Shown here: positions 8,477 through 62,966 of the stretch, one piece after another
How positions within the stretch are numbered: the stretch's first letter is position 1
Layout of the letters: every line of letters begins with the position of its first letter
Sequence record: NC_070966.1
DNA length: 64,000 nucleotides
Direction: 5' to 3' (one strand)
The notes under the pieces: generated by a model
The model's database searches: none
What the model was told of the DNA's origin: nothing
What the model saw: only the letters and a program-made list of their open reading frames with translations
Made by a program: the position numbers and the translations under genes

Positions 8477-9436
8477 ATGATTATTTTAGGAGCAGGTCTG
8501 GCTGGTACATTAGCTGGACTAATTAATCCTCAGGCTTTGATCTTAGAAGGATCAAAGTCCGTTGACGATATGAGAATGCATAAAGCTGTTCTTAGATTCA
8601 GAGACGATAAGATCGGTAAATTGACTGGCGTACCTTTTACTAAGATCAAGGTCCGTAAGTCAATTCATATCGACAATAAAGACTATTTGGAATGCACTCC
8701 TCGACTAGCGAATATGTATTCGAAGAAAGTCACTGAAGGATATTCAGATCGTTCGATCTGGAATCTAGAGACTAGCGATCGATTCATTGCTCCTACGAAT
8801 TTCCATGAGATTCTTATGAGCTACTGTGGTGATCGTATCAAGTTCAATCATAGTGTCACTGCAATCAAGTCAGATATGATTTATGCAAAAGACGATGTAA
8901 CGATTGAACGAGATGATGCTCCTATCGTTAGCACACTACCAATGCCTCTTCTAGGTCGTGTCATTGGTAAGCCATTCGACATCAAGTTCGAATCTAAGCA
9001 GATCAAGGTCTCTCGCTACAAGGTGAAAGGTGCCAAGATCAATCAAACGATCTATTTCCCAGGAACTGAGACACTTGCATATCGTGCATCGATGGTTCAA
9101 GATATTCTGATTATCGAGAAGATTGAAGACGATAGTGGAGCAATTAACGATCGAGTTGATGATGCGTATATTATCAATGCGTTCGGTCTAGATACTCTTG
9201 ATGTTGAATTCATTGAAGATGCATCTCAGCTTGGTAAGATCACAGCAATTGATGAGAAGGTTCGTAAGAATTTCATCTTCAATGTGACACGTGATCTGAA
9301 TGTATACTCATTAGGTAAATTTGCATTGTGGAAAAATCACACGTTATTGGATGACGTTTATGATGACATATTCAAGATTAAAACTTATATGTCAGGTACT
9401 GATTACGATAGAATGAAATCAAGTTTTGGTAATTGA
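8477..9436 (+). CDS. FAD/NAD(P)-binding oxidoreductase-like protein
   Basis: N-terminal Rossmann motif IILGAGLAG and C-terminal VYSLGKFALW. Confidence 0.75.
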   Translation: MIILGAGLAGTLAGLINPQALILEGSKSVDDMRMHKAVLRFRDDKIGKLTGVPFTKIKVRKSIHIDNKDYLECTPRLANMYSKKVTEGYSDRSIWNLETSDRFIAPTNFHEILMSYCGDRIKFNHSVTAIKSDMIYAKDDVTIERDDAPIVSTLPMPLLGRVIGKPFDIKFESKQIKVSRYKVKGAKINQTIYFPGTETLAYRASMVQDILIIEKIEDDSGAINDRVDDAYIINAFGLDTLDVEFIEDASQLGKITAIDEKVRKNFIFNVTRDLNVYSLGKFALWKNHTLLDDVYDDIFKIKTYMSGTDYDRMKSSFGN

Positions 9437-11845: not shown

Positions 11846-12646
11846 ATGGTAAGTAGAGCTGTTCCTAATGTCCGACTTCTGCAGTCGACTCAGAAAGCTA
11901 AAGAACTACTAGTATTTAGTAAGAATACTAGACTGACAATGACAGCCAATATGTATGACGATATCGTCAATCGTAAGGATCAGTGGACAGAGGAGAAGAT
12001 CGACTCTGAACTTGATTATATGGCTAATACAATTCCTAGTAGTTGGGAGTTCTGTGATCTGTATTTTATTATCACAGGTGTCTCTCGAGCATTCACGCAT
12101 CAGTTTGTTAGAAATCGTACTAACTCTTATGCACAACAGACAATGAGAGTTCTGGATATGTGCGAGTTTGATTATGTCTTTACTCGACCATATACTGATC
12201 TTCCGACGGATCGAGATCCGACTAAGGAAGAACTCATTAATATGTCTTATGACTTCCATACTAATAAAGCATTGGAAGAAGTCCAGAAGAGATATAATGC
12301 TATGATTGAGGATGGCGTACCTGCAGAAGATGCACGAGGCATTCTCCCTACGAACATCGCTACCAACATTCTTGCGAAGATCAATCTTCGTACGTTTGCT
12401 GATATGGCTAAGTCTCGTACAGGTGGACGTACTCAAGGTGAGTACCAGATGATCATGAATCAGATGGTTGATGAAGTTCTGAAGGTACATCCATGGGCTG
12501 AGAAATTCTTCTTTAAGCAGGGTCGAGATTACTTCAAGGATCTTGAAGATCTATGTGCTGAAATCTTTGGGTCTGGTACAACCAAAGAGAATCTGCATAC
12601 TAAGGGTCGATTCTTGAAAATTATCGACAAGATGCGTAAAGGTTAA
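11846..12646 (+). CDS. thyX: Flavin-dependent thymidylate synthase family protein, variant motif
   Basis: SRAFTHQFVRNRTNSYAQQTMRV, ARGILP, NLRTF. Confidence 0.85.
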   Translation: MVSRAVPNVRLLQSTQKAKELLVFSKNTRLTMTANMYDDIVNRKDQWTEEKIDSELDYMANTIPSSWEFCDLYFIITGVSRAFTHQFVRNRTNSYAQQTMRVLDMCEFDYVFTRPYTDLPTDRDPTKEELINMSYDFHTNKALEEVQKRYNAMIEDGVPAEDARGILPTNIATNILAKINLRTFADMAKSRTGGRTQGEYQMIMNQMVDEVLKVHPWAEKFFFKQGRDYFKDLEDLCAEIFGSGTTKENLHTKGRFLKIIDKMRKG

Positions 12647-14616: not shown

Positions 14617-15339
14617 ATGACAACGAATACTAGTGAGAAATCTCTGAAGAATGACATTGCTGTTAGTTCTCCAGATAAGAAGAGACTGACATTCGCTATC
14701 GACTTCGATGGCGTTATTTATCCATACAAGAATGGATATAACAATGGGCTCATGTCTGAAGATCCCATTCCAGGTGCTCGAGATGCACTGATTCACCTTC
14801 GCAATGAAGGTCATAAGATCATAATCAACACCTGTCGAGGTGCTGTAGAAGATCTTAAATCTTACTTCAATCTCCATGACATTCCATTCGATGAAATCAA
14901 TGAGAACTCAGATAACTATGAGGACTCAAATAAGGGTAAACCTTTTGCTGATTATTACATCGATGATCGAGCTATTCGATTCGAAGGCGATTGGTCCCTC
15001 ACATTAGATGAGGTACGTCGCAAGAGATTCCCATGGTTCATTAAGTCTGAGAATAAGATTGCAGCAGATCTTATGAATGACTCAGCAGAACTGTATCGAC
15101 AGCGTAATCTTGTTTATGGCGACTCATACCGTCGTCACGGTGAGATTATGGCTAAACTATTTCCTAATGGCGTAACCTTGAAGACAGCCGAAGATTTTAA
15201 TCGATTCGGTATCGTTAACATGAAGATTTCTAAGGTTACAAGATATTGTCAGAATTTTGAGAAGGGTGGTCATCTTGACTCAGTGATCGATGATGGTGTT
15301 TATACCTTCATGCTTGCTGAGCTTGATATGTCCAAGTAG
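14617..15339 (+). CDS. HAD-family phosphatase fused to a putative all-alpha dNTP pyrophosphohydrolase (DUF6378/DUF1599-like)
   Basis: N-terminal IDFDGVI...KPFADYYIDDRA. C-terminal RNLVYGDSY...K..R...DS..D..VY. Confidence 0.65.
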   Translation: MTTNTSEKSLKNDIAVSSPDKKRLTFAIDFDGVIYPYKNGYNNGLMSEDPIPGARDALIHLRNEGHKIIINTCRGAVEDLKSYFNLHDIPFDEINENSDNYEDSNKGKPFADYYIDDRAIRFEGDWSLTLDEVRRKRFPWFIKSENKIAADLMNDSAELYRQRNLVYGDSYRRHGEIMAKLFPNGVTLKTAEDFNRFGIVNMKISKVTRYCQNFEKGGHLDSVIDDGVYTFMLAELDMSK

Positions 15340-30598: not shown

Positions 30599-30604
30599 TA
30601 CTCT

Positions 30605-46609: not shown

Positions 46610-46810
46610 ATGTCGAGCACCAGGGCTAAGAAAGAAGACTTGACTCCAGAGCAAATCATGGAGCTAAAGGAGACTCACGTTATCCTTCACGAGGATGATG
46701 TTTATATCGAGTTCGTTCCCAATATTGTGGAAACGATTATGCTCGATAAGTTTTTCAGTGCAATCAACCCAGAAGAAGAGAATAATGGCGACAACAACCT
46801 CACAACCTAG
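46610..46810 (+). CDS. Hypothetical protein
   Basis: AAGGAG RBS. Confidence 0.7.
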   Translation: MSSTRAKKEDLTPEQIMELKETHVILHEDDVYIEFVPNIVETIMLDKFFSAINPEEENNGDNNLTT

Positions 46811-48110
46811 TGCAGCTCCGATCGCACAGATTGAAGCTCGTAATCTTATCGAGGCTGATTATCTCGAGTACGGTGCATATGTGAACACGACTCGATCTGT
46901 TCCAGGCTATGATGGTCTGAAGTCAGGTCAACGTCGTGTTCTCTTTGCATTAAGAGATGTAGATGATGGATCTGATGAAATTCCTTCTCTGGAAGTAGTT
47001 ACTCAGACTCTGAAGAAGTACCATCCTCACGGTGATGCCTCTATCTACGATACGATGTGTCGACATATCCACAAGGGATTTATCGAAGGTCGTAGTAACT
47101 TTGGTACCAATCACTTGATGGAAGAAATCGGTGCAGCCGCATACCGATATACCTATGTGAAGCCTCATAAGCAATTCACTGATGGTGCGTTTCGATTCAT
47201 CGATCAGGTACCGACTGTTGAGAATGAATATGGTCTCAATGAACCTACGTATCTACCAGTACCGATTCCTCTAGGACTAACAACTGGTGCAAAAGGTATC
47301 GGTATTGGTCTTCTCTGCAACATTCCTGCATTTTCTCCTAAGTCTCTTTTTGATGCACTTATGGCAGATGATCCTTCTCGTCTGAAAGCACCTGCTGGTA
47401 CTTTCATTGTAAGTGGCGATATGGATAAGCTCTGGAAGACAGGTGAAGGCTGGATCCAATATGGTCTCAAGTGCTATCAGACTTGGCATGATCTGGACGG
47501 TAAGACCGTATCAGTTATTGAAGGATCTGGTCGTATCTTCAAGCCTCGTATTTGGGATACTTTCTCTACATTGATTGAAGATGAGAGTGTTTATACTCGA
47601 GACGAATCTGGTGAAAAGATCAAGATGATCATCACTCGAGTCAAGGGTCTTAAGCGTATTACTGATGAACAAGTTCACCAGATGGCTCAGCAAGCAGCTG
47701 TCGAGAAGATGTTCTTCCGTATCTACGTTACTGAGAACAAGGTCGTTTATCGTAAGTCGATGAAGGACTGGATGCAAGAATTGTGGGCTCGTTACGAGAA
47801 AGTAGTTGATACTTACAAGACCACTCAGGTTAACGATTTGAATCATCGAATCAGAATTCTGAATCTAATTCCTGTAGCAGCACCTGGCATTCTTCAGGAT
47901 CTTCCGATCTCTGAAATTGCTAAGACAACTGGAGCTAGTGAGGCTGATCTTCGAGAAGTCGAAGGTAAGTCGATCAAAATGCTCCGTAAGTCAGACTTTG
48001 GTGCTCAGATTACTGATCTCAATAAGAAGATTACCAATGTCCAGAAGATCAGTGCTAAGGCTCTAGCAGTTGACTTCGTTGATATGCTTGAGAAGGCTCA
48101 GGCTATCTAA
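46785..48110 (+). CDS. Type IIA topoisomerase subunit A (GyrA/ParC/gp52-like, no C-terminal pinwheel)
   Basis: DGLKSGQRR, KYHPHGDASIY, AAYRYT (catalytic Tyr), GIGIG. Confidence 0.92.
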   Translation: MATTTSQPSAAPIAQIEARNLIEADYLEYGAYVNTTRSVPGYDGLKSGQRRVLFALRDVDDGSDEIPSLEVVTQTLKKYHPHGDASIYDTMCRHIHKGFIEGRSNFGTNHLMEEIGAAAYRYTYVKPHKQFTDGAFRFIDQVPTVENEYGLNEPTYLPVPIPLGLTTGAKGIGIGLLCNIPAFSPKSLFDALMADDPSRLKAPAGTFIVSGDMDKLWKTGEGWIQYGLKCYQTWHDLDGKTVSVIEGSGRIFKPRIWDTFSTLIEDESVYTRDESGEKIKMIITRVKGLKRITDEQVHQMAQQAAVEKMFFRIYVTENKVVYRKSMKDWMQELWARYEKVVDTYKTTQVNDLNHRIRILNLIPVAAPGILQDLPISEIAKTTGASEADLREVEGKSIKMLRKSDFGAQITDLNKKITNVQKISAKALAVDFVDMLEKAQAI

Positions 48111-48136
48111 ACTCATTTATAAATCGAGGAGTCAAT

Positions 48137-50083
48137 ATGACTGAATCAATTTCGATTATGACGCCACTCCAGCAGATGTTCCATCGTCGTGGTATGTACA
48201 TCGGTGGCGCTGAGAATCCTGAAATCCTAGCTAAGGAACTTATCGATAACGCACTCGATGAACTCCTCTGCGGTTATGCCGATCGAATTGAATTCGATTG
48301 GGATCTCAAAGAAGGATGGTTCAGGATTCGAGATAATGGTAGAGGCATGCCTCTATCTCAGTTCCATACTGAAGATCAGGACATGTCTGGATTGAATGGA
48401 GCTATTCAGGCTCGTCTTCTCTTCACTCGACCATTCTCGTCTGGTAAGTACGACAAGAATAACTACAAGTATTCGTCCGGTACGAATGGTGTAGGTATCA
48501 AGGCAGTCAACGTTTTCAGTACGAAGACTGAAGTACGTGTCAAGGATAAGAAGCTCGTTCATAATGGCGATCTGTATCATCTCACTCTTGGATGGACTGA
48601 GCCAGAACGTGTCCAGACAATTGATGAGCAGTGGATTGATGCTAGCACGATTGAAGACTTCTGGTGGTCTACTGAAGTCAAATGCTATCCGAATATGGAA
48701 GTCTTTAAGACGATCAAGTGCAAGATTCGTGAGACTCAGCTTCAGCTAGCTAAGACTTCGAAGCCTACCTGTAAGATCGTTGTCAATGGTGAAGAGATCA
48801 AGCCATTCTCATTCCGTGAGAGTGTTACTAATGATCTCCTTCTGAATAAGACTTTCAAAGTCAATGTCACGGTTGGATATACCAACTTCGAGATTGAACT
48901 TGGATGGTCCTCTAAAGATTTCAATTCCTACTATCGTGGAGCAGTCAATCTTGGTTCATGTAATGAAGGTTGGCATATCAAGGAGACCAAGTATGCAGTA
49001 GGTCGAGTACTTGCTGGATATGATGATCTGTTGACTAACTCGGATGCCGAGTACGGTCTCCGTATGTTTATCAACTGCCTGATCTCTGAACCGATCTACA
49101 CTTCTCAGACCAAGGAGAAGTTAGCTGGTGTGACTGACTTCGATGTATTCAATGAAGCATTGATGCGTAAGAAGTATGCCGATCTTATCGAGAAGGATGA
49201 GAACGGTAGAGAGAATGTCGTCAAGGCTAAGGAAGCAGTCAAGAATGATCCTGAATTCCTGAAACCTGAGTTGCTCTATGCTGCTATTCAGAAAGCTGTC
49301 AAGAAAGAACTTGACCAGGATGAATCGTTCAAGACAGTTCTTGTTAAGAGAATTGTTGAGTACAAGAAATCTGTCCAGAAACTATCTGAGCAGAGCTTCA
49401 TCAATTCTATCGTTAAGACTGGCAATCATAAGATCGCTAGAAATTCGGTAGTAGGTATCAAGGAAGCAGGGTCTGCTGATCGTGCTAAGTGCGAACTCTT
49501 CATCTGCGAAGGTAAGTCTGCAGAAGGTAATCTTCTTCAGAAGAGAGATCGTATGTTCCAGGCAGTCTTCCCTCTTCGTGGTAAGCCATTGAATGCTGCC
49601 AATGTGAGTGACATCAAACAGATTCTTGAGAATCGTGAGATGAAGACTCTGGTCAACGGTATCGGTGCAGGTATTCTTCCTCAGGTCGATCTTACTCATG
49701 CTCGTTATGGTAAGTTGATCATCCTTACAGACGCTGACCCAGACGGTAAGAATATTGAAGCTCTCATTATCGGAGCTCTCTTGTTCTTGAATCCTAAGGT
49801 CATTGAAGCAGGTATGCTATATACAGTAGCTGCTCCTCTGTACAAGCAGGATGGTAAGCTTCTATATTCAGAGAAGGATCTGAATATGAAGAAGAAATTC
49901 AAGAGATTCAAAGGTCTCGGATCGATGATGGCTGATGAACTTGAAGCTAGTGCTCTGAAGTCAACTACACGTAAGCTACGTCAAATCACATTAACTGAAG
50001 CTCGTGAGAAAGCTCTCGAAATCATTACTTCTTCTCACGAGAAGAAGCGTATTATGACAACCAATAAAATCCTAGTCGAGTAA
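48137..50083 (+). CDS. Type IIA topoisomerase subunit B (GyrB/ParE-like)
   Basis: MYIGG, ELIDNALDE, DNGRGMP, GTNGVG, EGKSA, PLRGK, TDADPDG, RFKGLG. Confidence 0.95.
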   Translation: MTESISIMTPLQQMFHRRGMYIGGAENPEILAKELIDNALDELLCGYADRIEFDWDLKEGWFRIRDNGRGMPLSQFHTEDQDMSGLNGAIQARLLFTRPFSSGKYDKNNYKYSSGTNGVGIKAVNVFSTKTEVRVKDKKLVHNGDLYHLTLGWTEPERVQTIDEQWIDASTIEDFWWSTEVKCYPNMEVFKTIKCKIRETQLQLAKTSKPTCKIVVNGEEIKPFSFRESVTNDLLLNKTFKVNVTVGYTNFEIELGWSSKDFNSYYRGAVNLGSCNEGWHIKETKYAVGRVLAGYDDLLTNSDAEYGLRMFINCLISEPIYTSQTKEKLAGVTDFDVFNEALMRKKYADLIEKDENGRENVVKAKEAVKNDPEFLKPELLYAAIQKAVKKELDQDESFKTVLVKRIVEYKKSVQKLSEQSFINSIVKTGNHKIARNSVVGIKEAGSADRAKCELFICEGKSAEGNLLQKRDRMFQAVFPLRGKPLNAANVSDIKQILENREMKTLVNGIGAGILPQVDLTHARYGKLIILTDADPDGKNIEALIIGALLFLNPKVIEAGMLYTVAAPLYKQDGKLLYSEKDLNMKKKFKRFKGLGSMMADELEASALKSTTRKLRQITLTEAREKALEIITSSHEKKRIMTTNKILVE

Positions 50084-50085
50084 CA

Positions 50086-50985
50086 ATGAACGATTTTAAT
50101 GTAATCCTTACAGGTTCTGCTGGTTACATTGGAAGCATCGTTGGCGATCGTCTACTGAAATCCAATTCGATTGATTTGGAGACAGTAGACGTCGTCTCTG
50201 ACGTTCTTCCAGTAGATACTATCTTAACTGAAGTTGGTAATCTATCCAACAAGTCATCTGATGTCCTTGTTCATCTTGCTGCAAAGATCTCAGTAGTCGA
50301 ATCTCATAAGCAAGCTCGTCAGTACTACGAGAACAATTGTAGTCAATTCCATGAGATGTTGAATGATCGTGGTAACTATTTCAAGCATGTTATCTATGCA
50401 TCCTCTTTCTCGATTTATGATTCTGATTTGAGTATCTATCCTCAGTCTGTCTATGCATCCACCAAATACGAAGGTGAATGGATTCTCAAGAGATGGGCTC
50501 AGATGACGAATCGAGATTATTCAATCCTACGATTTGCCAATCCAATTGGCGTTAGTCAATCACTTCACTCTCATATTGCAGACCGTATTCAATCGAGCTA
50601 TGCTAATGTTATGTGGAGACTTGCTCGATGCAAATTACTAGGTGAGATGTTCTACATTCATGATCTACCTGGTATGACACGTGATTTTTATCCCGTTGAA
50701 TGGATTGGATACGCTATCGATTGGATCGCGAAGAATGGTCCCGTAGGTACTGTAAATCTAGGTAGTGGTAAGCCTGTATCGGTTATGGATCTTCTTCAGC
50801 ATATCTGTGAGAAGTATAATATCAGTTACAAATATGTTCTACCACCTGAAGGTACTGCTCTAGGTATTACCAAGAAGGTTGATGTATTCAAAGAAGGTAT
50901 TCCTGATTTTGATACATACGATCCAGTTGTATATTGTGAGAAGTCGTTTTTAGATTATCTATCGTTGATTCAGAACGCGAACTAA
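50086..50985 (+). CDS. NAD-dependent epimerase/dehydratase (GalE-like SDR)
   Basis: TGSAGYIG, HLAAKISVVES, YASTK (YxxxK), LRFANPIG. Confidence 0.88.
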   Translation: MNDFNVILTGSAGYIGSIVGDRLLKSNSIDLETVDVVSDVLPVDTILTEVGNLSNKSSDVLVHLAAKISVVESHKQARQYYENNCSQFHEMLNDRGNYFKHVIYASSFSIYDSDLSIYPQSVYASTKYEGEWILKRWAQMTNRDYSILRFANPIGVSQSLHSHIADRIQSSYANVMWRLARCKLLGEMFYIHDLPGMTRDFYPVEWIGYAIDWIAKNGPVGTVNLGSGKPVSVMDLLQHICEKYNISYKYVLPPEGTALGITKKVDVFKEGIPDFDTYDPVVYCEKSFLDYLSLIQNAN

Positions 50986-51003
50986 CGCTAGATTAGCCTT
51001 CCT
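50977..51003 (+). promoter_or_regulatory. Motif class A GCGAA-N13-AGCCTTCCT
   Basis: Exact consensus upstream of the glycosyltransferase genes. Confidence 0.75.
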
Positions 51004-51030
51004 TCTCGTAGAATGAATAAGAGGATCACC

Positions 51031-51213
51031 ATGAAAGATCTACGTGAATTCAAATCTAAGCTTGATGCTAAGTTCGATACTCAGACATCTTGGGGTAAGA
51101 ATCAGATCAAGCAAGTCATCAATGATACTTATATTGAAATCATTGAAAGTAAAGTAGAAGGTACTATCGAGCAGTCGACTCCTTCTAATCGTATCGACGA
51201 AGACTCTAAGTAA
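51031..51213 (+). CDS. Hypothetical protein
   Basis: GAGGA RBS favours ATG 51031. Confidence 0.7.
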   Translation: MKDLREFKSKLDAKFDTQTSWGKNQIKQVINDTYIEIIESKVEGTIEQSTPSNRIDEDSK

Positions 51214-51235
51214 TTTTCTAGTCAAGGTTAACAAT

Positions 51236-52423
51236 ATGAATTTTCTTTATATCACAAGAAGCATTGATCCGCTAGCTGCTGATCATCGTCCTGAAGCATA
51301 TGATCGTTATCGATTCTATGCTCCGATGATGTCACGACTAGCTGAGATCGGTGGAGGTGACGTCTACCTTCAGACTCGTTATAATCCTAAGGATTATCGT
51401 CCTGGTGGTACGATTGAAAGAATGGAAAGAAATTTCCGTCTTCCTAAGAAGTACAAGACTGGTGATAAGATTGATATGATCGTATGTGCCATCTTCTGCC
51501 CAGACGATGACATTACATTCAATGAGGATCTGAACAAGTTTCGTCAGACTCTTGAAGATACAGGTGCTCCGTATATCTATCATGACTCTGACAAAGAATT
51601 CTCTACTCAGGACGATCAGCAAGATCTTTTCCATCCAGGAAATAAGAACTATTTCCTTCAGACAATATCTAAGCTTCCAGAGGATGATATTCTCCGATCC
51701 CGACTACGCTGCGTGGCTACGTCGGTTCCGGATGCAGATTATCATCAGATTCTGAAGGATAATCTCAAGGTCGATGTAACGTATCTACCTGCTACGTTCT
51801 GGGGAGACTGGAAAGATAAGTTTGGATACACTCCTCTTTCAGATCGTAAGTACGATCTGACATTCCTTCGTGACTTCTATCTGAATCCGAAGCGTTCAGT
51901 CATTTTGAAGAATCTTGGTACTGGTGTATCGGATATCAGTGTTCTTCTTGGATCTCGTAGTGGCGACCCTTCTAGTCGTGGAGGATACATCAGCCATAAG
52001 GTTCCGACGATTGATTTTGATCAGATGCGTCAAGGAGCTACGTACAATGATCTATCGAAGTACATGTCTAAGTCTCGTCTGACTCCGTCTACGAGTATTT
52101 ATATGCGTGTCACTTCTAAGCTATTCGAAGCAGCTGAGAGTCGTACTCTAGCACTACTCTTCTCTCCGTGCTTCTATTCAGACGTAGTTGATCATCCTTC
52201 TGAGGCAGATGCTTATCTGAGTCAACTTGCTCTTGTAATTCCAGGATCCACTACTGTAAGTCAGTTGATTACACGTATTCGTAGTCTGACTGATGAAGAA
52301 TACTTGAAGCTTGTTGAGGTTCAGGATAAGCTCGTTGAGACTGTATTCAGTATCAAATCTGATTACATCACAGGCAAGCTGACCAAGATCATCACGGATT
52401 ATGTAGGTAATGTGAATGGCTAA
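51236..52423 (+). CDS. Putative GT-B glycosyltransferase (DNA beta-glucosyltransferase-like)
   Basis: C-terminal half YDLTF..., TSKLFEA, LITRIRSL..EEY....QD loosely resembles T4 BGT; next to the epimerase and GT-A genes. Confidence 0.45.
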   Translation: MNFLYITRSIDPLAADHRPEAYDRYRFYAPMMSRLAEIGGGDVYLQTRYNPKDYRPGGTIERMERNFRLPKKYKTGDKIDMIVCAIFCPDDDITFNEDLNKFRQTLEDTGAPYIYHDSDKEFSTQDDQQDLFHPGNKNYFLQTISKLPEDDILRSRLRCVATSVPDADYHQILKDNLKVDVTYLPATFWGDWKDKFGYTPLSDRKYDLTFLRDFYLNPKRSVILKNLGTGVSDISVLLGSRSGDPSSRGGYISHKVPTIDFDQMRQGATYNDLSKYMSKSRLTPSTSIYMRVTSKLFEAAESRTLALLFSPCFYSDVVDHPSEADAYLSQLALVIPGSTTVSQLITRIRSLTDEEYLKLVEVQDKLVETVFSIKSDYITGKLTKIITDYVGNVNG

Positions 52424-53294
52424 TGTTCTAGTTACTCTCATTACCAATCGACCAGATATTTCTTCGGAACGATGGATCGGTACCATCGGAAAGCTATCTA
52501 AGCTTTCCGAGTACCATGATATGACCTACTCGATTCTTCTACAACCTCCTTTTACAGTAGAAGACTGTGATAAAGTTCGTTCTCGAGTAGTTGAAGCACT
52601 CGGTCCTAAGAATCAGGTAGTCGTAGAGCATTTTATTAATCCTCCAGGTCCATTCAATTTTAGAACTGCTCGAAATCAGGCTATGTTGAATGTACCGTAT
52701 CTGAATACTTTTGACTACGTTCTTATCACTGACGATGACTTCAAGTTCAGTGGTCCTACTCCTAAGGGATATGACTCATGGGAACGTTATCATCAGGCTA
52801 TTAAGTATCTCGATGAAAACCGTCGATGCGGTGGTGTATTAATCAAAGGTATGTTTGGATCTCCTCCAGTCGATAAGGGTGGAAATGAGGTATCAAAGGT
52901 ACATGACGAGTACTACTCGACCAATCGAGGCATTCTTCATCGTAATGTGATGAAGTACGATAACGTAGATTGGATCTACTCAAATGAATGCTTCGATTAT
53001 CCTTCTGCTCTCGAGGATGCAGCAGCTTGTTTCTCTCGAATTGAGCTCGGCTACTATTATGCTCGTATCTGGAAGTCACCCACCACACCTCTTCCTGTGA
53101 AGCAGACATGTGCTGATGACATCCCTGATGACAATATCTACTCGCGACATATGGTCAATGAAGTAGGTATTGGTAAAGCTATCCGTGAACGTTACGACGA
53201 TCCTACATGGGAAGTCGATCAGAAGCGTATGCCTAAGAAACTCAACAATCTTAAACTCGAAGCCATGAACAATCGTGGATGGGTTGTAACCTAA
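52416..53294 (+). CDS. Putative GT-A (GT2-like) glycosyltransferase
   Basis: FRTARNQAM, YVLITDDDFKF (DxD), LEDA. Confidence 0.6.
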   Translation: MANVLVTLITNRPDISSERWIGTIGKLSKLSEYHDMTYSILLQPPFTVEDCDKVRSRVVEALGPKNQVVVEHFINPPGPFNFRTARNQAMLNVPYLNTFDYVLITDDDFKFSGPTPKGYDSWERYHQAIKYLDENRRCGGVLIKGMFGSPPVDKGGNEVSKVHDEYYSTNRGILHRNVMKYDNVDWIYSNECFDYPSALEDAAACFSRIELGYYYARIWKSPTTPLPVKQTCADDIPDDNIYSRHMVNEVGIGKAIRERYDDPTWEVDQKRMPKKLNNLKLEAMNNRGWVVT

Positions 53295-53305
53295 GGAGTC
53301 TCGAC

Positions 53306-53545
53306 ATGAAACATCTTCTTGAGAAAGCAACGACTCTCGTCAAGCAGTCTAATAAACTGACTCTGGAATACCGTAAGTCTCCAGATGAATTGAAATCTAA
53401 GACTCAAGAGATCGTCAAGCACTTTCTCGAATTCAACGAGATCGAATCGAAAGAAGATTTCATAGATCAATTGTCGTCCAAATCTGAGGAGACAGGTAAT
53501 ATGGATTACCTGTCTGCAGCTGAGATTATCCGAGAGTACTCTTAA
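53306..53545 (+). CDS. Hypothetical protein
   Basis: AAGGAG RBS before ATG 53306. Confidence 0.75.
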   Translation: MKHLLEKATTLVKQSNKLTLEYRKSPDELKSKTQEIVKHFLEFNEIESKEDFIDQLSSKSEETGNMDYLSAAEIIREYS

Positions 53546-53850
53546 TGTTTAAAATTACTGTAGAGTCGTCTCAACCTGTTAAGAGTATCAACATTGAGTT
53601 CGGTGAAACTCAGGAGACGAAGGCTGAATTCTATCCTGTACCGACCTTTGAGACTAAAGGTGTAGAGAGTCTTAAATACGAGACTCCTCCTTCATCTGAG
53701 TCATATGAAGACGTTCTAGCAAGACGAGCATCGACTGTATCGACTACTCCTGTAAAGCCTAAAGAGACTGAGACTGCTCCAGAAGTAGTCGAGGATCTCA
53801 CTAATCGACCTGCACTTGTTGATCAATCCTTTGCAGGATCTACTTTCTAA
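53545..53850 (+). CDS. Hypothetical protein
   Basis: TAATG-coupled; MFKITVES. Confidence 0.75.
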   Translation: MFKITVESSQPVKSINIEFGETQETKAEFYPVPTFETKGVESLKYETPPSSESYEDVLARRASTVSTTPVKPKETETAPEVVEDLTNRPALVDQSFAGSTF

Positions 53851-53858
53851 GAGGTAAT

Positions 53859-54824
53859 ATGAAAACTGTATTAGGTCTTGATCCTGGGTACGGAGACTTC
53901 AAGGTATGCTTCGGTAATTCTAAAGGGATTATCTCTAAGCTATACAAGTTCAACTCCGTACTAGGTCGTGTTGATGTCAGTCAACATATCAACGATACTC
54001 GAGTTTATGGATATAAAGGTACGACCTACTATGTAGGTGAGATGGCCTTGAAACTTGAGTCATCTCGAATCATCGACTTGATGTCTTACAACAATCTGGA
54101 GACATTCTCTCCTCTCCTGATTGAACATGTCATCAATGAACTAGGAGAAGTTCCAGATATCGTCGTATGTGGTCTTTCGATCGCTCACGTTGACTATTCA
54201 GGATACTATCGAGATGCGATTCTTAACTATCTTGTTAAGGAGAAGAATCTTCCAATCAAGGATGTCCGCATCATCCCACAAGGTGTAGGTGGTAAGTTAA
54301 CGTATGACAAGTATGGTCGTACATTCCCTGCCCTCACATCAGAATTCAGTGATGACAACAACTATGTAGGTTGTGATATTGGATTCAATACACTCGATGT
54401 ATTCCATGTCATTCAGAACAAGGTATCTCCTAACTTGATTAGAGGTATTGAGAGTCAAGGTGTAGTCAAGATCGTAACTCGACTTCTTGAGTATATCAAG
54501 AATGACTACAGTCTGGAGTTCTCTGTTAAGGAAGGTAAGAACATCCTTGATAATGGTCAATTTAAGATCCGTGGACGTGAATTTGATGTCACCAAACAGA
54601 TTGAAGTGATCAAACGTTCTTATCTTGAAGAAGTCAAGGAACTCATCGAGAATGAATTCGGAGCAGTACTTGACAAGGTCGAGAAGATCAAGATGTTTGG
54701 AGGAGGTTCATATCTCTTCAATACGATGAATGACTCCTTCATCGAAACTCCAGAATCTCGTGCTGAATACTATAATTCCATCGGGAATTATCTACATGGC
54801 TTGACAATTGTCGAGAAAGATTAA
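53859..54824 (+). CDS. ParM/StbA-family actin-like ATPase
   Basis: Phosphate-1 GLDPGYGDFK, connect PQGVGG, phosphate-2 CDIGFNTLD, adenosine GGGS. Confidence 0.88.
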   Translation: MKTVLGLDPGYGDFKVCFGNSKGIISKLYKFNSVLGRVDVSQHINDTRVYGYKGTTYYVGEMALKLESSRIIDLMSYNNLETFSPLLIEHVINELGEVPDIVVCGLSIAHVDYSGYYRDAILNYLVKEKNLPIKDVRIIPQGVGGKLTYDKYGRTFPALTSEFSDDNNYVGCDIGFNTLDVFHVIQNKVSPNLIRGIESQGVVKIVTRLLEYIKNDYSLEFSVKEGKNILDNGQFKIRGREFDVTKQIEVIKRSYLEEVKELIENEFGAVLDKVEKIKMFGGGSYLFNTMNDSFIETPESRAEYYNSIGNYLHGLTIVEKD

Positions 54825-54828
54825 TCTT

Positions 54829-54868
54829 AAGGTCTACTAGAAGAGATTCTAGTAGACCTTTTCTTTTT
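54829..54868 (+). terminator. Intrinsic terminator
   Basis: AAGGTCTACTAGAA/TTCTAGTAGACCTT stem followed by TTCTTTTT. Confidence 0.85.
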
Positions 54869-54877
54869 GAGGATAAA

Positions 54878-55237
54878 ATGCTCAAATTAGATAGAAGTGT
54901 CAAAGAGTCTGAGTGTCTACACTACGAATTTGATATTAATGGTGGTTATAGCATTACACTAAAAATCGTCTTTGATGATACTGAAGAGAATGCGATTCAC
55001 TTTGATTCTCATGATCACGATGTTCAGATTAATGGATTTAAATATTATATTTTAGACTCAGATACATACAGTAATGGGACATCAATGAGGATTATGAAGA
55101 TATCGTCTACAAATGATGATAGTGCTAAATACCTGATGTCTTATATTGAAGGTTTTATCATCAAAAATAAATTAGGAAACTCTAGCGGACTTCGATATAG
55201 ATCTTATATACGATCAGATCAACATTCACTCAAGTGA
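54878..55237 (+). CDS. Hypothetical protein
   Basis: GAGGA RBS. Confidence 0.7.
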   Translation: MLKLDRSVKESECLHYEFDINGGYSITLKIVFDDTEENAIHFDSHDHDVQINGFKYYILDSDTYSNGTSMRIMKISSTNDDSAKYLMSYIEGFIIKNKLGNSSGLRYRSYIRSDQHSLK

Positions 55238-55246
55238 GGACAGAAG

Positions 55247-55975
55247 ATGGCTCGTTGCTATGTAGGATGTAGTGGATTCTCGTATAATCATTGGAATGAT
55301 AACTTCTACCCTGCAGGAGTAGAGCGGTTTTCATTTTATACGAGTCAATTTGATTCATTAGAGATCAATAGTTCATTCTACAGATTACCTAGTGCAAGCG
55401 TATTCTACTCATGGTATCGACGATCACCTGCTCATATGACATTCACTGTGAAAGCTCCTCAGACGATTACTCATCGTAAGAAGCTAAAGGATGCTGACGA
55501 TATAGTTCAGAGATTCTATGAGAATACTCTTGAGCTAGGTGACAAGATGAAATGTGTCTTATGGCAGTTACCTCCTAATTTCTCCATAAGAATGTATGAT
55601 CGTGTCAAGAAATTCTGTGACAGTATTCATAACAGATTTCCTAATTCAGCATTCGAGTTCAGACATCCTTCATGGATGCAGACTCACGTACCTCAACTTC
55701 TATCTGCATACGACTTTGAGTTTGTACGTACAGATTTTCATAAATACGTAAATGTATCCATGGATGGATCCTCGTCTAAATTCCAGTACTATCGATTACA
55801 TGGACCTACAGGTCAGTATCACGGTCGCTACACTGATGAGTTTCTTGAGAATATAGCTGATCGTCTAACGGATGGATCATTCGTATTCTTCGATAATGAT
55901 AGTGGAGGTCAAGCTCCTAGGGATGCTAAAAGATTAATCAAAATTCTAGAGACAAGAAATGAAATTAAATTATAG
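55247..55975 (+). CDS. DUF72 (YecE-like) protein
   Basis: VGCSGFSY..W...FYP, EINSSFY, FTVKAPQ.ITH, LWQLPP, EFRH.SW, YYRLHG, FFDND. Confidence 0.92.
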   Translation: MARCYVGCSGFSYNHWNDNFYPAGVERFSFYTSQFDSLEINSSFYRLPSASVFYSWYRRSPAHMTFTVKAPQTITHRKKLKDADDIVQRFYENTLELGDKMKCVLWQLPPNFSIRMYDRVKKFCDSIHNRFPNSAFEFRHPSWMQTHVPQLLSAYDFEFVRTDFHKYVNVSMDGSSSKFQYYRLHGPTGQYHGRYTDEFLENIADRLTDGSFVFFDNDSGGQAPRDAKRLIKILETRNEIKL

Positions 55976-56504
55976 AGCATATGCAGGAATTGGATCAAGA
56001 AGTACTCCTCCACATATTCTTGAATTTATGAGAATTCTAGCATTCAAGCTTGGATCTCAAGAAGATCCGTGGACTGGTCGATCAGGTCACGCTGATGGTG
56101 CAGATGATGCATTCGAAGTAGGTATGGAACAAGCTAATGGACCTATGGAGATCTTTCTACCGTGGAGAGGTATGGCTAACAGTCGATGTAAGAGTGATTC
56201 TCCGTATTACGAAATCAAAACAATTGCTTACGATCTAGCTTCTAGGATTCACCCTAAATGGTACGGATTAACTCATGGAGCTAAGAAACTTCATGCTAGG
56301 AATACTTATCAAGTCTTAGGTTACGATCATCAGACTTGGAGTAAAGCTGTTGTATGCTATACTTCTGACGGTCTACCGATTGGAGGTACTCGTACAGCGA
56401 TTAAGATAGCAGAGATGCACGGTATTCCGGTTATCAATCTAGGTGATCCTGAGTGTAAATACGAAACTCCTGATCAAGTTGTGGAATATTTAAACTCTCT
56501 ATAG
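55959..56504 (+). CDS. SLOG-superfamily (DprA/Smf-like) protein
   Basis: YAGIGSR.TP, RSGHADGADDAFE, LHARN..QVLG, GGTRTAI. Confidence 0.75.
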   Translation: MKLNYRAYAGIGSRSTPPHILEFMRILAFKLGSQEDPWTGRSGHADGADDAFEVGMEQANGPMEIFLPWRGMANSRCKSDSPYYEIKTIAYDLASRIHPKWYGLTHGAKKLHARNTYQVLGYDHQTWSKAVVCYTSDGLPIGGTRTAIKIAEMHGIPVINLGDPECKYETPDQVVEYLNSL

Positions 56505-56505
56505 A

Positions 56506-56532
56506 GCGAATCTAGCGTGGGAAAGCCTTCCT
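56506..56532 (+). promoter_or_regulatory. Motif class A GCGAA-N13-AGCCTTCCT
   Basis: Exact consensus, intergenic. Confidence 0.75.
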
Positions 56533-56560
56533 TCTTATTGTAGAATGGAGTGCAGATTCA

Positions 56561-57469: not shown

Positions 57470-58372
57470 ATGTTTAACCTCAAAATTGATAATCCAAACT
57501 TGCACAGTATTCTTGAATCTCTGAGTGGGAAAAATATTGATTATTTTCACAATAATGGGAATTCAGGAGATTCAATAATATCGGTTGCAGCATATCAAAC
57601 ATTTGATAAGTTTGATATTAAAGTTTCGGCTTACAATAAACCTCGTGCTCATAAACAAACTAGTGACACACTCTTCATAGCCGGAGGGGGAAATCTTGTA
57701 TCATATTACCCTGACTGTGAACGAGCTATCAAAGAGGGTATGAAGAAGTACGATAAAATTATTGTCCTTCCTCACTCTATCCGAGGTAAAGAAGAACTTC
57801 TCAAGAAGATGGATAAAAGGTTCACAGTCTTTACTCGTGAAGTTCCATCTCATGAATACGTTAAGTCGATGGTCAGATCGGACGTAACTGTTCATCTTGA
57901 ACATGATATGGCTTTCTTCATGGATGTAAAAGCTATCTTTGAAGATCCTACGATCAATGAGAAAGCTAATAAATTCTACATTAATAAACTTCGATCAATC
58001 GGTCGAGGTCCTGAAGATGTTATTGGCAAGGATAATTACTGTTTCCGTGAAGACGTCGAAGCAGTTGTAGAGGTTAAGTCTTCTCAGAATGTCGATATCT
58101 CTCATCTGTTCGAAAGAGGATTGGATCGTACGAACTCTTTCATCGCTGCTAATGCATTTCTAAAGTACATTGATGCTTCAAAGTCAATTACTACAAGTCG
58201 TCTTCATACAGGCATTGGTGCAGCTATGTGCGGTACTCCTGCTACGGTATTTGATAATTCATATGGCAAGATTTCTAGTATCTACGAATTCTCAATGAAG
58301 GATCGTGGATACAACTTCCGTGTAGGTCTCATTGATGAAATGAGATCAATTATCGAACGAATTGAGGACTGA
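57470..58372 (+). CDS. Polysaccharide pyruvyl transferase family protein
   Basis: GNSGDSII, GGGNL, LPHSI, RE..S, HDMAF, TSRLH..I.A...G, NSYGK. Confidence 0.85.
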   Translation: MFNLKIDNPNLHSILESLSGKNIDYFHNNGNSGDSIISVAAYQTFDKFDIKVSAYNKPRAHKQTSDTLFIAGGGNLVSYYPDCERAIKEGMKKYDKIIVLPHSIRGKEELLKKMDKRFTVFTREVPSHEYVKSMVRSDVTVHLEHDMAFFMDVKAIFEDPTINEKANKFYINKLRSIGRGPEDVIGKDNYCFREDVEAVVEVKSSQNVDISHLFERGLDRTNSFIAANAFLKYIDASKSITTSRLHTGIGAAMCGTPATVFDNSYGKISSIYEFSMKDRGYNFRVGLIDEMRSIIERIED

Positions 58373-59111: not shown

Positions 59112-59112
59112 T

Positions 59113-59430: not shown

Positions 59431-59432
59431 AT

Positions 59433-62957: not shown

Positions 62958-62966
62958 GGTGCAACC

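Follow-up and report, generated by a model that had tools for sequence, protein, structure and literature searches.

The DNA analysed here, a window of 64,000 nucleotides from record NC_070966.1, belongs to the 207-kb genome of Rhizobium phage RHph_TM30 (Kleczkowskaviridae; TM30 hereafter). Its plus strand carries the three open reading frames (ORFs) that a first-pass annotation had read as an epimerase and two glycosyltransferases (GTs), encoding 299 (gp258, 50086..50985), 395 (gp260, 51236..52423) and 292 amino acids (gp261, 52416..53294), together with a small RefSeq CDS between the epimerase and gp260 (gp259, 51031..51213, +), which has a weak, sub-threshold DUF6137 match (E 1.5e-4). The reported position right after a topoisomerase gene also holds. 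A gyrA-like (46785-48110, +) and a gyrB-like type II topoisomerase gene (48137-50083, +), annotated in RefSeq and matched by tblastn to phage GyrB/topo II genes, open the transcription unit in which the cassette lies (46785..50083); they are separated by 26 nt, and the ATG of the epimerase lies 2 nt past the gyrB-like stop codon. The downstream end of the unit (53306..54860, +) comprises gp262, gp263 and a ParM/actin-like gene (53859-54824, +), followed by a hairpin resembling a terminator, with a 14-bp stem and a T-run (54829-54860), which closes the unit and is the sole strong terminator-like site from gyrA to that point. The product of gp263, encoded shortly 3' of the cassette, is acidic and S/T/P-rich. 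Intergenic gaps from gyrA to parM range from -8 to 45 nt, and the 8-nt overlap of gp260 with gp261 is read as translational coupling. The unit lies on the early/middle strand, with the structural genes some 45 kb away on the opposite strand.

The cassette ORFs are 98.6-100% conserved across the genus of TM30, apart from gp258 of phages TM61 and TM39, and have full-length distant relatives at 45% (gp260) and 32% identity; they are therefore real genes. The trio of epimerase, gp260 and gp261 is kept in all complete genus members. In TM61 and TM39 the gp258 allele is only 80-82% identical, whereas the flanking genes are at least 98.6% identical, and the epimerase allele has thus been swapped without gp260 and gp261 taking part. 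As had been noticed earlier, the products lack an obvious transmembrane segment (maximal Kyte-Doolittle 19-mer value, 1.15): they are soluble, and their genes are tightly packed within the gyrA-to-parM unit.

By its profile matches and motifs, gp258 is a GalE-like extended SDR of the NDP-hexose 4-epimerase type, as first proposed, with an intact catalytic set, namely GSAGYIG at residues 10-16 (G10xxG13xxG16), S106-109 and YASTK at 123-127 (Y123xxxK127). It matches Pfam Epimerase (E 2e-15), phrog_540 (2e-25), the TIGR galE model (5e-18, at 65 bits and thus below the curated cut-off of 262 bits), PDB entry 6dnt (4e-11) and GalE structures (about 1e-6). The enzyme presumably supplies the donor sugar.

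The assignment of gp261 as an overlapping GT-A enzyme with a DxD motif is borne out by modelling. The AlphaFold2 (AF2) model (pLDDT 81.4, pTM 0.83) has 76 Foldseek matches in the PDB at E<=1e-3, and all 50 listed are GT-A enzymes, among them AvpGT, the top match (2e-7), which was crystallised with the nucleoside Ara-A, as well as TarS, TarP, GnT-I, RmlT and mannosylglycerate synthase. In addition, Foldseek finds GT2-like AFDB clusters at about 1e-8 and viral GT-A proteins in BFVD. In the family of 28 members formed by gp261 and 27 relatives, the residues kept are R86, the DDD at 106-108, of which D106 and D107 are invariant and D108 nearly so, and E200-(D/E)201 (E200-D201 in gp261). The model and these residues mark gp261 as a GT-A-fold glycosyltransferase, its DDD motif being of the metal-binding kind. 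None of the 28 members matches a Pfam family, not even that of the TET-associated GTs, and gp261 thus founds a family outside all Pfam models.

The first-pass annotation had also credited the 395-residue ORF, gp260, with BGT-like features in its C-terminal part; the ORF exists, but the likeness to BGT is unconfirmed. gp260 has no Pfam, PHROG or PDB matches, its AF2 model reaches a pLDDT of 44, and an exhaustive phmmer search finds nothing beyond its own cluster; among more than 5.8 billion proteins it has exactly one distant relative (P0002, 45% identity). Neither a BGT-family HMM (rank 156th of 6,003 against shuffled sequences, not significant) nor hhalign against BGT (E 0.11, not significant) detects sequence similarity to BGT, and none is detectable to AGT. 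The protein contains a conserved TSKLFEAAESRT at 293-304. Its putative GT-B nature is pointed to solely by neighbours in a protein language model: the 100 ESM-Atlas clusters nearest to the whole protein score 0.95-0.97, a value of 0.95 being reached by only about 1 in 100 shuffled sequences, and they either belong to GT-B families (PF09198, PF13524) or are viral clusters that share no Pfam family. For the N-terminal half alone, two of the three named neighbours are the GT-B N-domains Gtf3_N and YkvP_N (0.80-0.88).

The gene neighbourhoods of gp261 relatives were surveyed in 18 distinct contigs of uncultured phages. A ThyX-like gene lies within about 5 kb of the relative in 15 of the 18, a gene for a UDP-galactopyranose-mutase (UGM)-like flavoprotein is nearby in 14, and a HAD phosphatase gene, usually adjoining the GT-A gene, in 10. 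The gene order is UGM-GT-ThyX in L032, L035 and L039, UGM-ThyX-GT-HAD-PolIIIalpha in L034 and ThyX-MTase-HAD-GT-PolIIIalpha in L002; the ThyX-like gene directly abuts the GT-A gene in the first four of these contigs. Contig L031 is T4-like; there, an amino-acid:DNA transferase and a 5-hmdU DNA kinase lie on one side of the relative and a weak, sub-threshold GNAT-like ORF and a PLP enzyme on the other, which is the context of a DNA-level hypermodification cluster. Across at least three further phage lineages, relatives of gp261 sit among ThyX, DNA polymerase, RecA or 5-hmdU-modifying genes, and none in the contigs examined is surrounded by envelope or lysis genes. No gp261-related locus examined carries the epimerase or gp260.

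Each of the three partners has a homologue in TM30 (27-41% identity), encoded elsewhere in the window, 37-44 kb from the cassette. The first, gp190 (8477..9436, +), is a UGM-like FAD protein with GAGLAG at residues 5-10; it is about 60 residues shorter than bacterial UGM and only distantly similar, but the best PDB matches of its family profile are UGMs (E 2e-4 to 4e-4), aligned in three colinear blocks that include a C-terminal GRFxxW motif. Its RefSeq name, polysaccharide deacetylase, is unsupported. The second, gp196 (11846..12646, +), belongs to the ThyX family of flavin-dependent thymidylate-synthase-like proteins (Pfam Thy1, 5e-31) and has RNR...QQTMR in place of RHR...SxR. The third, gp205 (14617..15339, +), is a HAD-type phosphatase with an extra C-terminal domain, DFDGV at 29-33 and DD at 116-117; it matches the NCBIfam BT0820-family HAD model (4e-7), and its family profile matches PDB entries 2obb (2e-8) and 1xpj (3e-4), in place of its unsupported RefSeq name, phosphoheptose isomerase. 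A possible glycan-tailoring partner is gp269 (57470..58372, +), a polysaccharide pyruvyl-transferase-like protein (Pfam PS_pyruv_trans, 3e-16; PDB 6x1l, WbbZ, 1e-26), which among cultured phages is confined to the genus of TM30 and is 77-100% identical within it.

We tentatively read the cassette as a cytoplasmic glycosylation module, co-expressed with replication genes, that acts on the phage's own DNA or nucleotide precursors, a reading to which we give somewhat less than an even chance and which is preferred because gp261 relatives elsewhere adjoin nucleotide- or DNA-modifying genes. The first-pass annotation had left the acceptor as DNA or virion proteins; the ThyX-like, UGM-like and HAD neighbours and the 5-hmdU cluster are new support, at the level of gene context, that favours DNA. 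Its two-step scheme with a phage-made sugar survives in its architecture, a soluble epimerase with two transferase-like genes in a row within a replication operon, and in the phage-tailored nucleotide sugar, but not in its analogy to T4 BGT and hydroxymethylcytosine; the transferase with evidence for a link to nucleic acid is the GT-A protein gp261 and not the putative GT-B protein gp260. In the proposed pathway, gp258 would convert a host UDP-hexose, e.g., UDP-Glc to UDP-Gal, which gp190 may take on to the furanose form, and gp261 would place the first sugar onto a hydroxyl-bearing base in DNA. This base would most plausibly be a 5-substituted pyrimidine whose synthesis involves gp196; gp205 would have a nucleotide or sugar phosphate as its substrate, a second sugar would be added by gp260, provided that it is a GT-B enzyme, gp269 may attach a pyruvate ketal, and the glycosylated DNA would be shielded from host nucleases. 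Sugar decoration of DNA is a known anti-restriction strategy, of which the TM30 set would be an undescribed version.

Counting against DNA as the acceptor are the putative enzymatic nature of gp260, the distance to the partner genes and the missing epimerase and gp260 at related loci. Searches of TM30 (phmmer, E<=1) find no homologue of a ThyA-type enzyme, gp42-like protein, dCTPase, AGT or BGT, so that an hmC pathway is lacking, nor is there one of HMUDK or ADDT; its sole 2OG oxygenase is P4H-like and not of the Tet_JBP type, and no known maker of a glycosylatable base was found. A literature search yields no described ThyX-family hydroxylase or hydroxymethylase. In addition, the UGM-like and ThyX pair occurs without a gp261-like GT in PB1-like Pseudomonas phages and a Ralstonia phage, and the pair therefore has a GT-independent role; its association with gp261 relatives may reflect only a shared nucleotide-metabolism neighbourhood.

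The missing base-activating enzyme would be explained if the cassette's epimerase and both GTs, together with the pyruvyl transferase, worked instead at the inner membrane face on Rhizobium EPS, LPS or CPS intermediates linked to undecaprenyl, altering the surface polysaccharide during infection, e.g., to block superinfection or keep progeny from adsorbing to debris. Among the solved structures closest to gp261 are glycan GTs, including the wall-teichoic-acid enzymes TarS, TarP and RmlT; rhizobia typically have pyruvylated EPS, and WbbZ, the best PDB match of gp269, bears a name of the type given to O-antigen-cluster genes. Since a soluble or peripheral state is common among bacterial EPS/LPS GTs, the missing transmembrane segments do not argue against such a role; the Kleczkowskaviridae are reported to be unusually CAZyme-rich, and SGNH esterases and a pectin-lyase-fold protein in the tail module suggest a polysaccharide receptor. 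We nevertheless consider envelope remodelling unlikely: the cassette shares a transcription unit with topoisomerase genes, the relatives of gp261 keep company with DNA and nucleotide genes and not with envelope or lysis genes, initiating transferase, flippase and polymerase genes are absent, and the phages have a lytic life style, while most of the surface-converting GTs known come from prophages.

A different cytoplasmic acceptor, be it a protein (virion or not, e.g., gp263), an RNA (for instance a phage tRNA), a nucleotide or a small molecule, is likewise improbable. One variant, in which a phosphorylated acceptor is turned into a glycoside by a GT and a HAD phosphatase, on the pattern of the two-step pathways to compatible solutes or nucleoside glycosides, draws on the adjoining GT-A and HAD genes of PolIIIalpha-type phages, a pairing that resembles synthase/phosphatase pairs, and on the AvpGT (with Ara-A) and mannosylglycerate synthase matches of gp261. 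The acidic gp263 just 3', the roughly 20 tRNA genes of TM30 and the glycosylation of mycobacteriophage virions by phage GTs fit a protein or RNA target, to neither of which there is a specific link; the early/middle operon far from the structural genes and the hypermodification context of L031 speak against it. It is quite unlikely that gp260 is no GT but a structural, regulatory or otherwise folded protein and that the trio is incidental jumbo-phage mosaicism, as its near-orphan status without HMM, PDB or fold support, the swapped epimerase allele and the gp261 relatives without epimerase or gp260 might suggest, since the 8-nt overlap, the conserved trio and the language-model neighbours of gp260, whole and N-terminal half, point the other way.

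The proposed DNA glycosylation by gp261 can be set against known systems. Like TarS, TarP, RmlT and AvpGT, gp261 has a GT-A catalytic domain with a DxD motif (Foldseek E 2e-7 to 1e-5, TM 0.45-0.58), but it shares only 13-16% identity with them, lacks their trimerisation and C-terminal domains and, unlike TarS, TarP and RmlT, has a context of nucleotide and DNA metabolism and not cell-wall synthesis. T4 AGT and BGT, GT-B enzymes acting on hydroxymethylcytosine, are likewise early-expressed soluble phage GTs among replication genes, and PF09198 (T4-Gluco-transf) clusters are among the neighbours of gp260; however, similarity to gp260 is undetectable, and TM30 lacks the gp42-type hydroxymethylase and gp56-type dCTPase. 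JGT, the base J glucosyltransferase of kinetoplastids, is of the GT-A type and acts on a 5-hydroxymethyl pyrimidine of DNA. It shares with validated phage DNA GT-A enzymes, which have TarP as top PDB homologue, an R...DDD...EDY/F pattern that is partly common to gp261, and a relative of gp261 is found within a cluster for 5-hmdU processing (L031). In structure and sequence, no closeness beyond the general GT-A fold is seen: JGT is absent among the top AFDB-cluster matches of gp261, TET-associated GTs rank only 40th and 49th in BFVD, and TM30 has no JBP-type dioxygenase.

In C5-MT/5mYOX (TET)-associated DNA glycosylation clusters, sequential GTs (subclass I) and GTs reliant on a partner epimerase (subclass II) act on DNA and provide experimentally validated precedents for both parts of the cassette (bioRxiv 10.1101/2023.12.21.572611). 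TM30 lacks their cytosine methyltransferase and TET/JBP dioxygenase, and the gp261 family falls outside their Pfam GT family; the shared features are an SDR epimerase adjoining a GT, two consecutive GTs among DNA-metabolism genes, and a GT-A protein with R...DDD...ED-type motifs and TarP as PDB neighbour. The architecture also parallels that of the Rhizobium phage RL38JI, one of the phages in which such DNA glycosylation has been established by experiment; with a UGM of its own and three soluble GTs it builds Gal-(Glc)1-2 onto the 5-hydroxycytosine of its DNA (PMC13326640); this glycosyl-5-hydroxycytosine pathway is that of RL38JI/Pootjesviridae, and an arabinosyl-5hoC pathway is that of RB69/DLP3 (Lee et al., NAR 2026, PMC13326640). 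TM30 differs in having no homologue of the ThyA-type 5hodCMP synthase, nucleotide kinase or dCTPase, its sole candidate base modifier being of the ThyX family with a fold unrelated to ThyA; in its best-supported GT being GT-A, whereas those of RL38JI match GT-B-type structures (PMC13326640); and in gp190 being only distantly UGM-like (E about 1e-4). In sum, TM30 resembles RL38JI in infecting Rhizobium, in having a contractile tail and several soluble GTs, and in encoding enzymes for nucleotide-sugar tailoring (UGM in RL38JI, epimerase and UGM-like protein in TM30), and resembles both pathways, with their stepwise sugars on DNA, in a thymidylate-synthase-superfamily-like partner and a HAD phosphatase whose family matches 1xpj, the top structural match of AfhF, the HAD protein of the arabinosyl pathway (PMC13326640).

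Nucleotides 50000-53400 of the window are 100% identical to Rhizobium phage RHph_TM30 (TM30; NC_070966.1, 207,623 bp; Kleczkowskaviridae, Cuauhnahuacvirus), for which the record coordinate equals the window coordinate plus 62,000, and nine other records from this genus also carry the cassette region. Outside the genus, the nearest GyrB is only ~30% identical, which leaves no close outgroup with which synteny could be compared. The three ORFs of the first-pass annotation lie on the + strand at 50086-50985 (gp258, 299 aa), 51236-52423 (gp260, 395 aa) and 52416-53294 (gp261, 292 aa), and a small + strand ORF, gp259, is found between the first two. The G+C content of the cassette (0.40-0.42) is like that of the remainder of the window. 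From gyrA (46785) to the end of a ParM/actin-like gene (54824), every gene is on the + strand and successive genes are -8 to 45 nt apart; the gyrB stop is 2 nt from the gp258 ATG, gp260 and gp261 overlap by 8 nt, and the sole strong terminator-like hairpin in a consensus scan from gyrA to the ParM-like gene is at 54829-54860. Given this spacing and these scans, the simplest reading places the cassette within one predicted topoisomerase-to-ParM transcription unit. The highest Kyte-Doolittle value over any 19-residue stretch of the cassette proteins is 1.15 or less, and they therefore have no obvious transmembrane segment, as had been noted from the sequence. Between the glycosyltransferase (GT) genes and the ParM-like gene lies gp263 (53545-53850), which encodes an acidic, Ser/Thr/Pro-rich protein of 101 aa with no family match. 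Right after the ParM-like gene, at 55247-56504, lie two overlapping genes, one for a DUF72 protein (Pfam, 1e-55) and one that is DprA/SLOG-like (phrog_768); both are absent from the partial record of RHph_TM21B.

The first protein of the cassette, gp258, matches the Pfam Epimerase family (2e-15; 57 bits, above the cut-off of 20.9) and the 'nucleotide-sugar epimerase' family phrog_540 (2e-25). Among solved structures the best match is 6dnt (4e-11), with GalE chains at ~1e-6. The dinucleotide-binding GxxGxxG motif is present as GSAGYIG (residues 10-16), and the catalytic Ser/Thr...YxxxK motif as SSFS (106-109) and YASTK (123-127), aligned with the equivalent stretch of 6dnt. The protein is thus predicted to be a member of the GalE-like extended SDR family, as first proposed; its score against TIGR galE (TIGR01179; 5e-18, 65 bits) is far under the equivalog cut-off of 262, so that its substrate is not assignable by sequence.

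The protein gp261 has no sequence match in Pfam, PHROGs or the PDB. A profile search gave 27 relatives, every one from metagenomic phage contigs, and none of the 28 family members matches a Pfam family at E≤0.01. An AlphaFold2 model built on the family alignment (pLDDT 81.4, pTM 0.83) gave 76 Foldseek matches in the PDB at E≤1e-3, the 50 listed being GT-A enzymes, with AvpGT first (2e-7), then TarS, TarP, GnT-I, RmlT and glycogenin. The AFDB clusters gave GT2-like matches at ~1e-8, and BFVD agrees. In the model, the DDD motif at residues 106-108 directly follows the strand 101-105; D106 and D107 are invariant and D108 is nearly so among the 28 sequences, and R86 and E200 are also invariant. 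The model, its structural matches and the conserved DDD confirm the overlapping DxD GT-A of the first-pass annotation as a single predicted Rossmann-like α/β/α GT-A fold, and the lack of a Pfam match for any of the 28 members indicates a family that is uncatalogued at the sequence level. Net charge and isoelectric point were dropped as hints of DNA binding, as the pI of the family ranges from 5.5 to 9.5 and T4 α-glucosyltransferase (AGT) is itself acidic.

The neighbourhoods of the gp261 relatives are the most informative result. We scanned the ORFs of 18 distinct gp261-family contigs with HMMs derived from proteins of TM30 and their homologues. In 15 of the 18 contigs, the gp261 relative has a ThyX-like gene next to it or within ~5 kb, and homologues of gp190 and gp205, two proteins encoded elsewhere in the window, are found in 14 and 10, respectively; next after these genes there is usually a gene for a PolIIIα-UDG polymerase. 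One more contig beyond the 18 carries Thy1, a methyltransferase and then the GT. The strings of UGM-like (gp190; UGM, UDP-galactopyranose mutase), GT-A and ThyX-like genes, with or without the HAD gene (gp205), are contiguous and often overlapping, and their order is permuted between uncultured phage lineages: gp190-GT-ThyX abut in contigs L032 (9073-11682), L035 (9060-11609) and L039 (8943-11618), the order is gp190-ThyX-GT-gp205-polymerase in L034 (7752-11366), and it is ThyX-methyltransferase-gp205-GT-polymerase in L002, L010 and L012. This difference in order between lineages argues for functional coupling over inherited synteny alone. The three contigs without a ThyX-like gene are L041, which is cut 0.7 kb upstream, L040, which has none of these genes, and L031, a T4-like contig (gp32, UvsX, clamp loader). 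In L031 (8307-12355), the GT-A gene is flanked on one side by genes for an amino-acid:DNA transferase (ADDT; PF18724, 6e-16) and a 5-hmdU DNA kinase (HMUDK; PF18748, 8e-14), and on the other by a PLP enzyme gene and a weak GNAT-like ORF (E ~1e-3, sub-threshold and under the Pfam cut-off), surroundings that we assign, by these family matches, to a predicted thymidine-hypermodification cluster. The word 'glycosyltransferase' was absent from those papers on thymidine-hypermodification pathways that our literature search listed. The epimerase and gp260 occur in none of the gp261-related loci examined.

A pair of UGM-like and ThyX genes, with a PNKP-type HAD gene and no gp261-like GT, is found in PB1-like Pseudomonas phages and a Ralstonia phage, and a search for a hidden GT-A beside the UGM-like gene of the PB1-like phages found none. 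Because this pair exists without the GT, the association may in part mirror only a common nucleotide-metabolism module. In Pseudomonas virus Pa193 (50609-63532 of its locus), the genes for the UGM-like protein, ThyX and a phosphatase of the HAD_PNKP type lie upstream of the DNA polymerase gene, and in a related Pam3-like Ralstonia phage two small ORFs occupy the place of the GT-A.

TM30 encodes homologues of all three partners in the same window (27-41% identity), namely gp190 (8477-9436), the ThyX-like gp196 (11846-12646) and gp205 (14617-15339). They are 37-44 kb away from the cassette, gp196 at 40 kb, and the neighbours of gp261 there are gyrB, the epimerase and gp260. TM30 has the quartet of gp196, gp190, gp205 and gp261, which in many uncultured phages is contiguous. 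The RefSeq name 'polysaccharide deacetylase' for gp190 is unsupported, and a UGM-like FAD protein is indicated instead: GAGLAG (residues 5-10) lies at the N-terminus, and the best PDB matches of an eight-sequence profile are UGMs (E 2e-4 to 4e-4), in three colinear blocks that include a C-terminal IYSxGRFxxWR segment. There is no Pfam GLF match, and because the hhalign alignment with E. coli Glf (E 0.003) covers the N-terminus alone, we call gp190 a probable UGM-like flavoprotein and go no further. The name 'phosphoheptose isomerase' for gp205 is equally unsupported; with DFDGV (29-33), DD (116-117) and family-profile matches to PDB 2obb (2e-8) and 1xpj (3e-4), the protein is predicted to be a HAD phosphatase that carries an additional domain at its C-terminus. 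Relatives of its HAD domain occur in SPO1-like Bacillus phages, ~157 kb Klebsiella phages, Ralstonia jumbo phages and crAss-like phages. The ThyX-like gp196 matches Pfam Thy1 (5e-31) and carries RNR...QQTMR, where the homologues of the PolIIIα lineage (L010-L012) have RHR...QQSxR. No ThyX signature tracks the presence of the GT-A, since the RHR and R(N/T)R variants are both found beside the GT. To our knowledge, ThyX is not a known hypermodification enzyme. A further candidate, the pyruvyl-transferase-like gp269 (57470-58372), matches Pfam PS_pyruv_trans (3e-16) and WbbZ in the PDB (1e-26).

We note several other TM30 genes. Outside the window, at NC_070966.1 9599-11873, a divergent PurA/PurZ-like gene (phrog_1211 'PurZ'-type, 3e-53, with NCBIfam PurA and PurZ scores both far under cut-off) lies beside a gene for a conserved 307-aa protein, and at 149183-153183 (23183-27183 of region L008) an HD 5'-deoxynucleotidase-like gene is directly upstream of the PolA gene; together these genes are similar to the gene set of 2-aminoadenine (Z-genome) phages. 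Homologues of the PurZ-like gene are also found in the gp261-family contigs L010 and L037, and the 307-aa neighbour in L010 only. At 28742-32320 of the window there are Ter-like genes ('tellurite resistance', vWA, membrane protein and TerD-like), and at NC_070966.1 4540-6055 genes for a ComF-like PRTase_3 and a HAD hydrolase; the combination is reminiscent of Ter-associated systems for nucleoside-like metabolites.

The remaining cassette protein, gp260, had been described as having C-terminal features like those of T4 β-glucosyltransferase (BGT), and this description could not be confirmed. Word-indexed and exhaustive HMMER searches recovered only its own 99%-identical cluster and one 45%-identical JGI protein, scans of IMG/VR and JGI metagenome contigs found no further relatives, and neither the single sequence nor a profile matched anything in Pfam, PHROGs or the PDB. 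The AlphaFold2 model from a 3-sequence alignment has a pLDDT of 44, with a β-α-β pattern in the N-terminal half only, and at this low confidence Foldseek gave 0 matches at E≤1e-3. Against an HMM built on seven relatives of BGT (26-100% identity), with 6,003 sequences scored of which 6,000 were shuffles, gp260 reached -0.1 bits and rank 156, and its distant relative rank 2,020. The hhalign alignment of gp260 with BGT is colinear and non-significant (E 0.11, probability 0.5%); it recovers a by-eye match of residues 293-309 to the R269/E272 segment of BGT, which is statistically unsupported. With this rank and this E-value, membership of the BGT family (GT63) was rejected. The sole positive evidence for a GT-B fold is provided by the ESM Atlas, where the 100 nearest clusters (0.95-0.97) are either viral without a common Pfam family or GT-B (PF09198 T4-Gluco-transf, PF13524 CgeB-like), at scores of which 0.95 is reached by ~1/100 shuffled proteins. 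For residues 1-195 the only named neighbours, at the level of a lead, are DUF2827, Gtf3_N and YkvP_N (0.80-0.88). We consider a GT-B fold likely for this putative GT. Ten other large hypothetical TM30 proteins were tested as extra GTs, and 0 of the 10 has a Pfam match.

Within the genus, the sugar-tailoring genes are variable whereas the GT genes are constant, as seen between TM30 and RHph_TM61 (TM61), whose proteins have a median identity of 99.7% over 89 window genes. On the 3' side of position 7,000, only four genes are below 95%: ThyX (11846-12646, 92.1%), gp232 (32377-33009, 82.9%), the epimerase gp258 (50086-50985, 82.1%) and the pyruvyl transferase gp269 (57470-58372, 92.7%); gp179 (765-6970) is 66.9% identical. 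Across the genus the pyruvyl transferase is 77 to 100% identical, and in TM39 the epimerase is 80% identical to that of TM30, versus at least 98.6% for gp260, gp261 and GyrB. Diversification of the sugar-tailoring steps is one possible explanation. Two homing-endonuclease genes and a 170-aa ORF (9433-10086, 11331-11843 and 56561-57469) are without a TM61 counterpart, and since ThyX and the pyruvyl transferase have homing-endonuclease or indel sites next to them, gene conversion suffices as an explanation; endonuclease-driven conversion may lie behind the divergent alleles of these two genes. In RHph_TM21B (MN988560.1, 86559-95626), the epimerase gene is missing and gp260 lacks its first 39 codons, the gyrB ORF continuing into gp260 sequence. 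This record is flagged 'partial genome' and has many gaps, with many other genes missing, so that we do not use it to argue for dispensability of the cassette; the gap may be an assembly artefact and not a natural deletion.

Taken as one pathway, gp258 would epimerise a UDP-hexose, gp190 would perhaps contract the ring of the product, gp261 would move the sugar onto a hydroxyl-bearing pyrimidine in DNA, gp260 would add a further sugar, and gp269 may tailor the glycan. We put at slightly under even the chance that DNA is the target of the cassette, which would then be a variant of the systems known to glycosylate DNA in phages. Host-envelope glycans are a real alternative as the acceptor, and so is another cytoplasmic molecule. 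The first-pass observation is largely borne out. Of the T4-analogous glycosylation of DNA, or of virion proteins, first proposed, what stands is a cytoplasmic, phage-tailored reaction, probably on DNA; the analogy with T4 and BGT falls, as gp260 shows no similarity to BGT or AGT and T4-type glucosylation of hmC is rejected by a phmmer search in which T4 gp42, gp56, AGT and BGT had no match at E≤1 among all TM30 ORFs. An ADP-heptose pathway, suggested by the RefSeq names 'phosphoheptose isomerase' and 'cytidyltransferase' and a heptose-epimerase-like SDR, is dismissed, because gp205 is a predicted HAD phosphatase, the 'cytidyltransferase' gp013 (NC_070966.1 6304-6867, outside the window) is a NUDIX hydrolase, and gp258 scores lower with the heptose epimerase model than with that of GalE.

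Returning to DNA as the target, a bolder proposal, which we regard as rather unlikely, is that the quartet of ThyX-like, UGM-like, 1xpj-type HAD and Pfam-less GT-A proteins forms an undescribed pathway of pyrimidine hypermodification. A ThyX-family flavoenzyme, rather than ThyA or TET, would make the hydroxylated or hydroxymethylated base, a furanosyl hexose would be attached to it in DNA, and TM30 would add the epimerase, a second orphan GT and possibly the pyruvyl transferase to give a di-hexosyl, perhaps pyruvylated base. Sugars on its DNA let a phage withstand restriction enzymes and CRISPR nucleases, and DNA so decorated is also a source of new DNA-modifying enzymes. What the analysis offers is an uncurated GT-A family that is repeatedly tied to ThyX-like, UGM-like and HAD genes beside phage DNA polymerases and that, in a cultured jumbo phage of Rhizobium, occurs together with an epimerase and a transferase-like orphan gene. 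If the TM30 DNA is glycosylated, this would be a second, independent DNA-glycosylation system of rhizobiophages, with possibly a new base-activating chemistry. It would also offer a model open to direct testing, since there are, besides the phage and its hosts, nine sequenced relatives that differ in their epimerase and pyruvyl-transferase alleles. Otherwise, the gene set points to a nucleotide-sugar activity, so far unexplained, within the replication modules of many phages.

The DNA-glycosylation routes known to us all begin with a ThyA-type enzyme or a TET-type dioxygenase, and our literature search found no paper tying ThyX, glycosyltransferases and hypermodification together. The DNA of RB69 and DLP3 contains arabinosyl-5-hydroxycytosine, the base of which comes from a flavin-binding ThyA homologue, and a HAD phosphatase with 1xpj as its top structural match helps to make the sugar donor (Lee et al., NAR 2026, PMC13326640); Rhizobium phage RL38JI, the DNA of which bears Gal-(Glc)1-2 on 5-hydroxycytosine, encodes a UGM, three soluble GTs and a ThyA homologue (PMC13326640). 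A 2026 preprint ranks Kleczkowskaviridae and Pootjesviridae highest among phage families for CAZymes per genome. Unlike the known systems, TM30 has no homologue of a ThyA-type enzyme, dCTPase, AGT/BGT, HMUDK or ADDT among the ORFs searched and, unlike the TET-associated clusters, no Tet_JBP-type oxygenase. Phage GT-A and GT-B enzymes have been shown by experiment to glycosylate 5hmC in DNA, from clusters of 'sequential GTs' or of 'epimerase + GT', the GT of the latter being usually epimerase-dependent; the GT-A enzymes have R...DDD...EDY/F in common with the trypanosome base J glucosyltransferase (JGT), and TarP is their top PDB match (bioRxiv 10.1101/2023.12.21.572611). For gp261, TarP ranks 10th and 16th among the PDB matches, no JGT-named entry is among the top 30 AFDB clusters, and TET-associated GTs come no higher than 40th and 49th in BFVD; its model thus suggests no special structural closeness to JGT or the TET-associated GTs. 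Its motifs are R86, DDD (106-108) and E200-D201-A202, with a family consensus of LEE[ST] and a third position that is not Y/F. In sum, the TM30 cassette follows the same logic as the experimentally characterized clusters (10.1101/2023.12.21.572611), with motifs that are partly alike.
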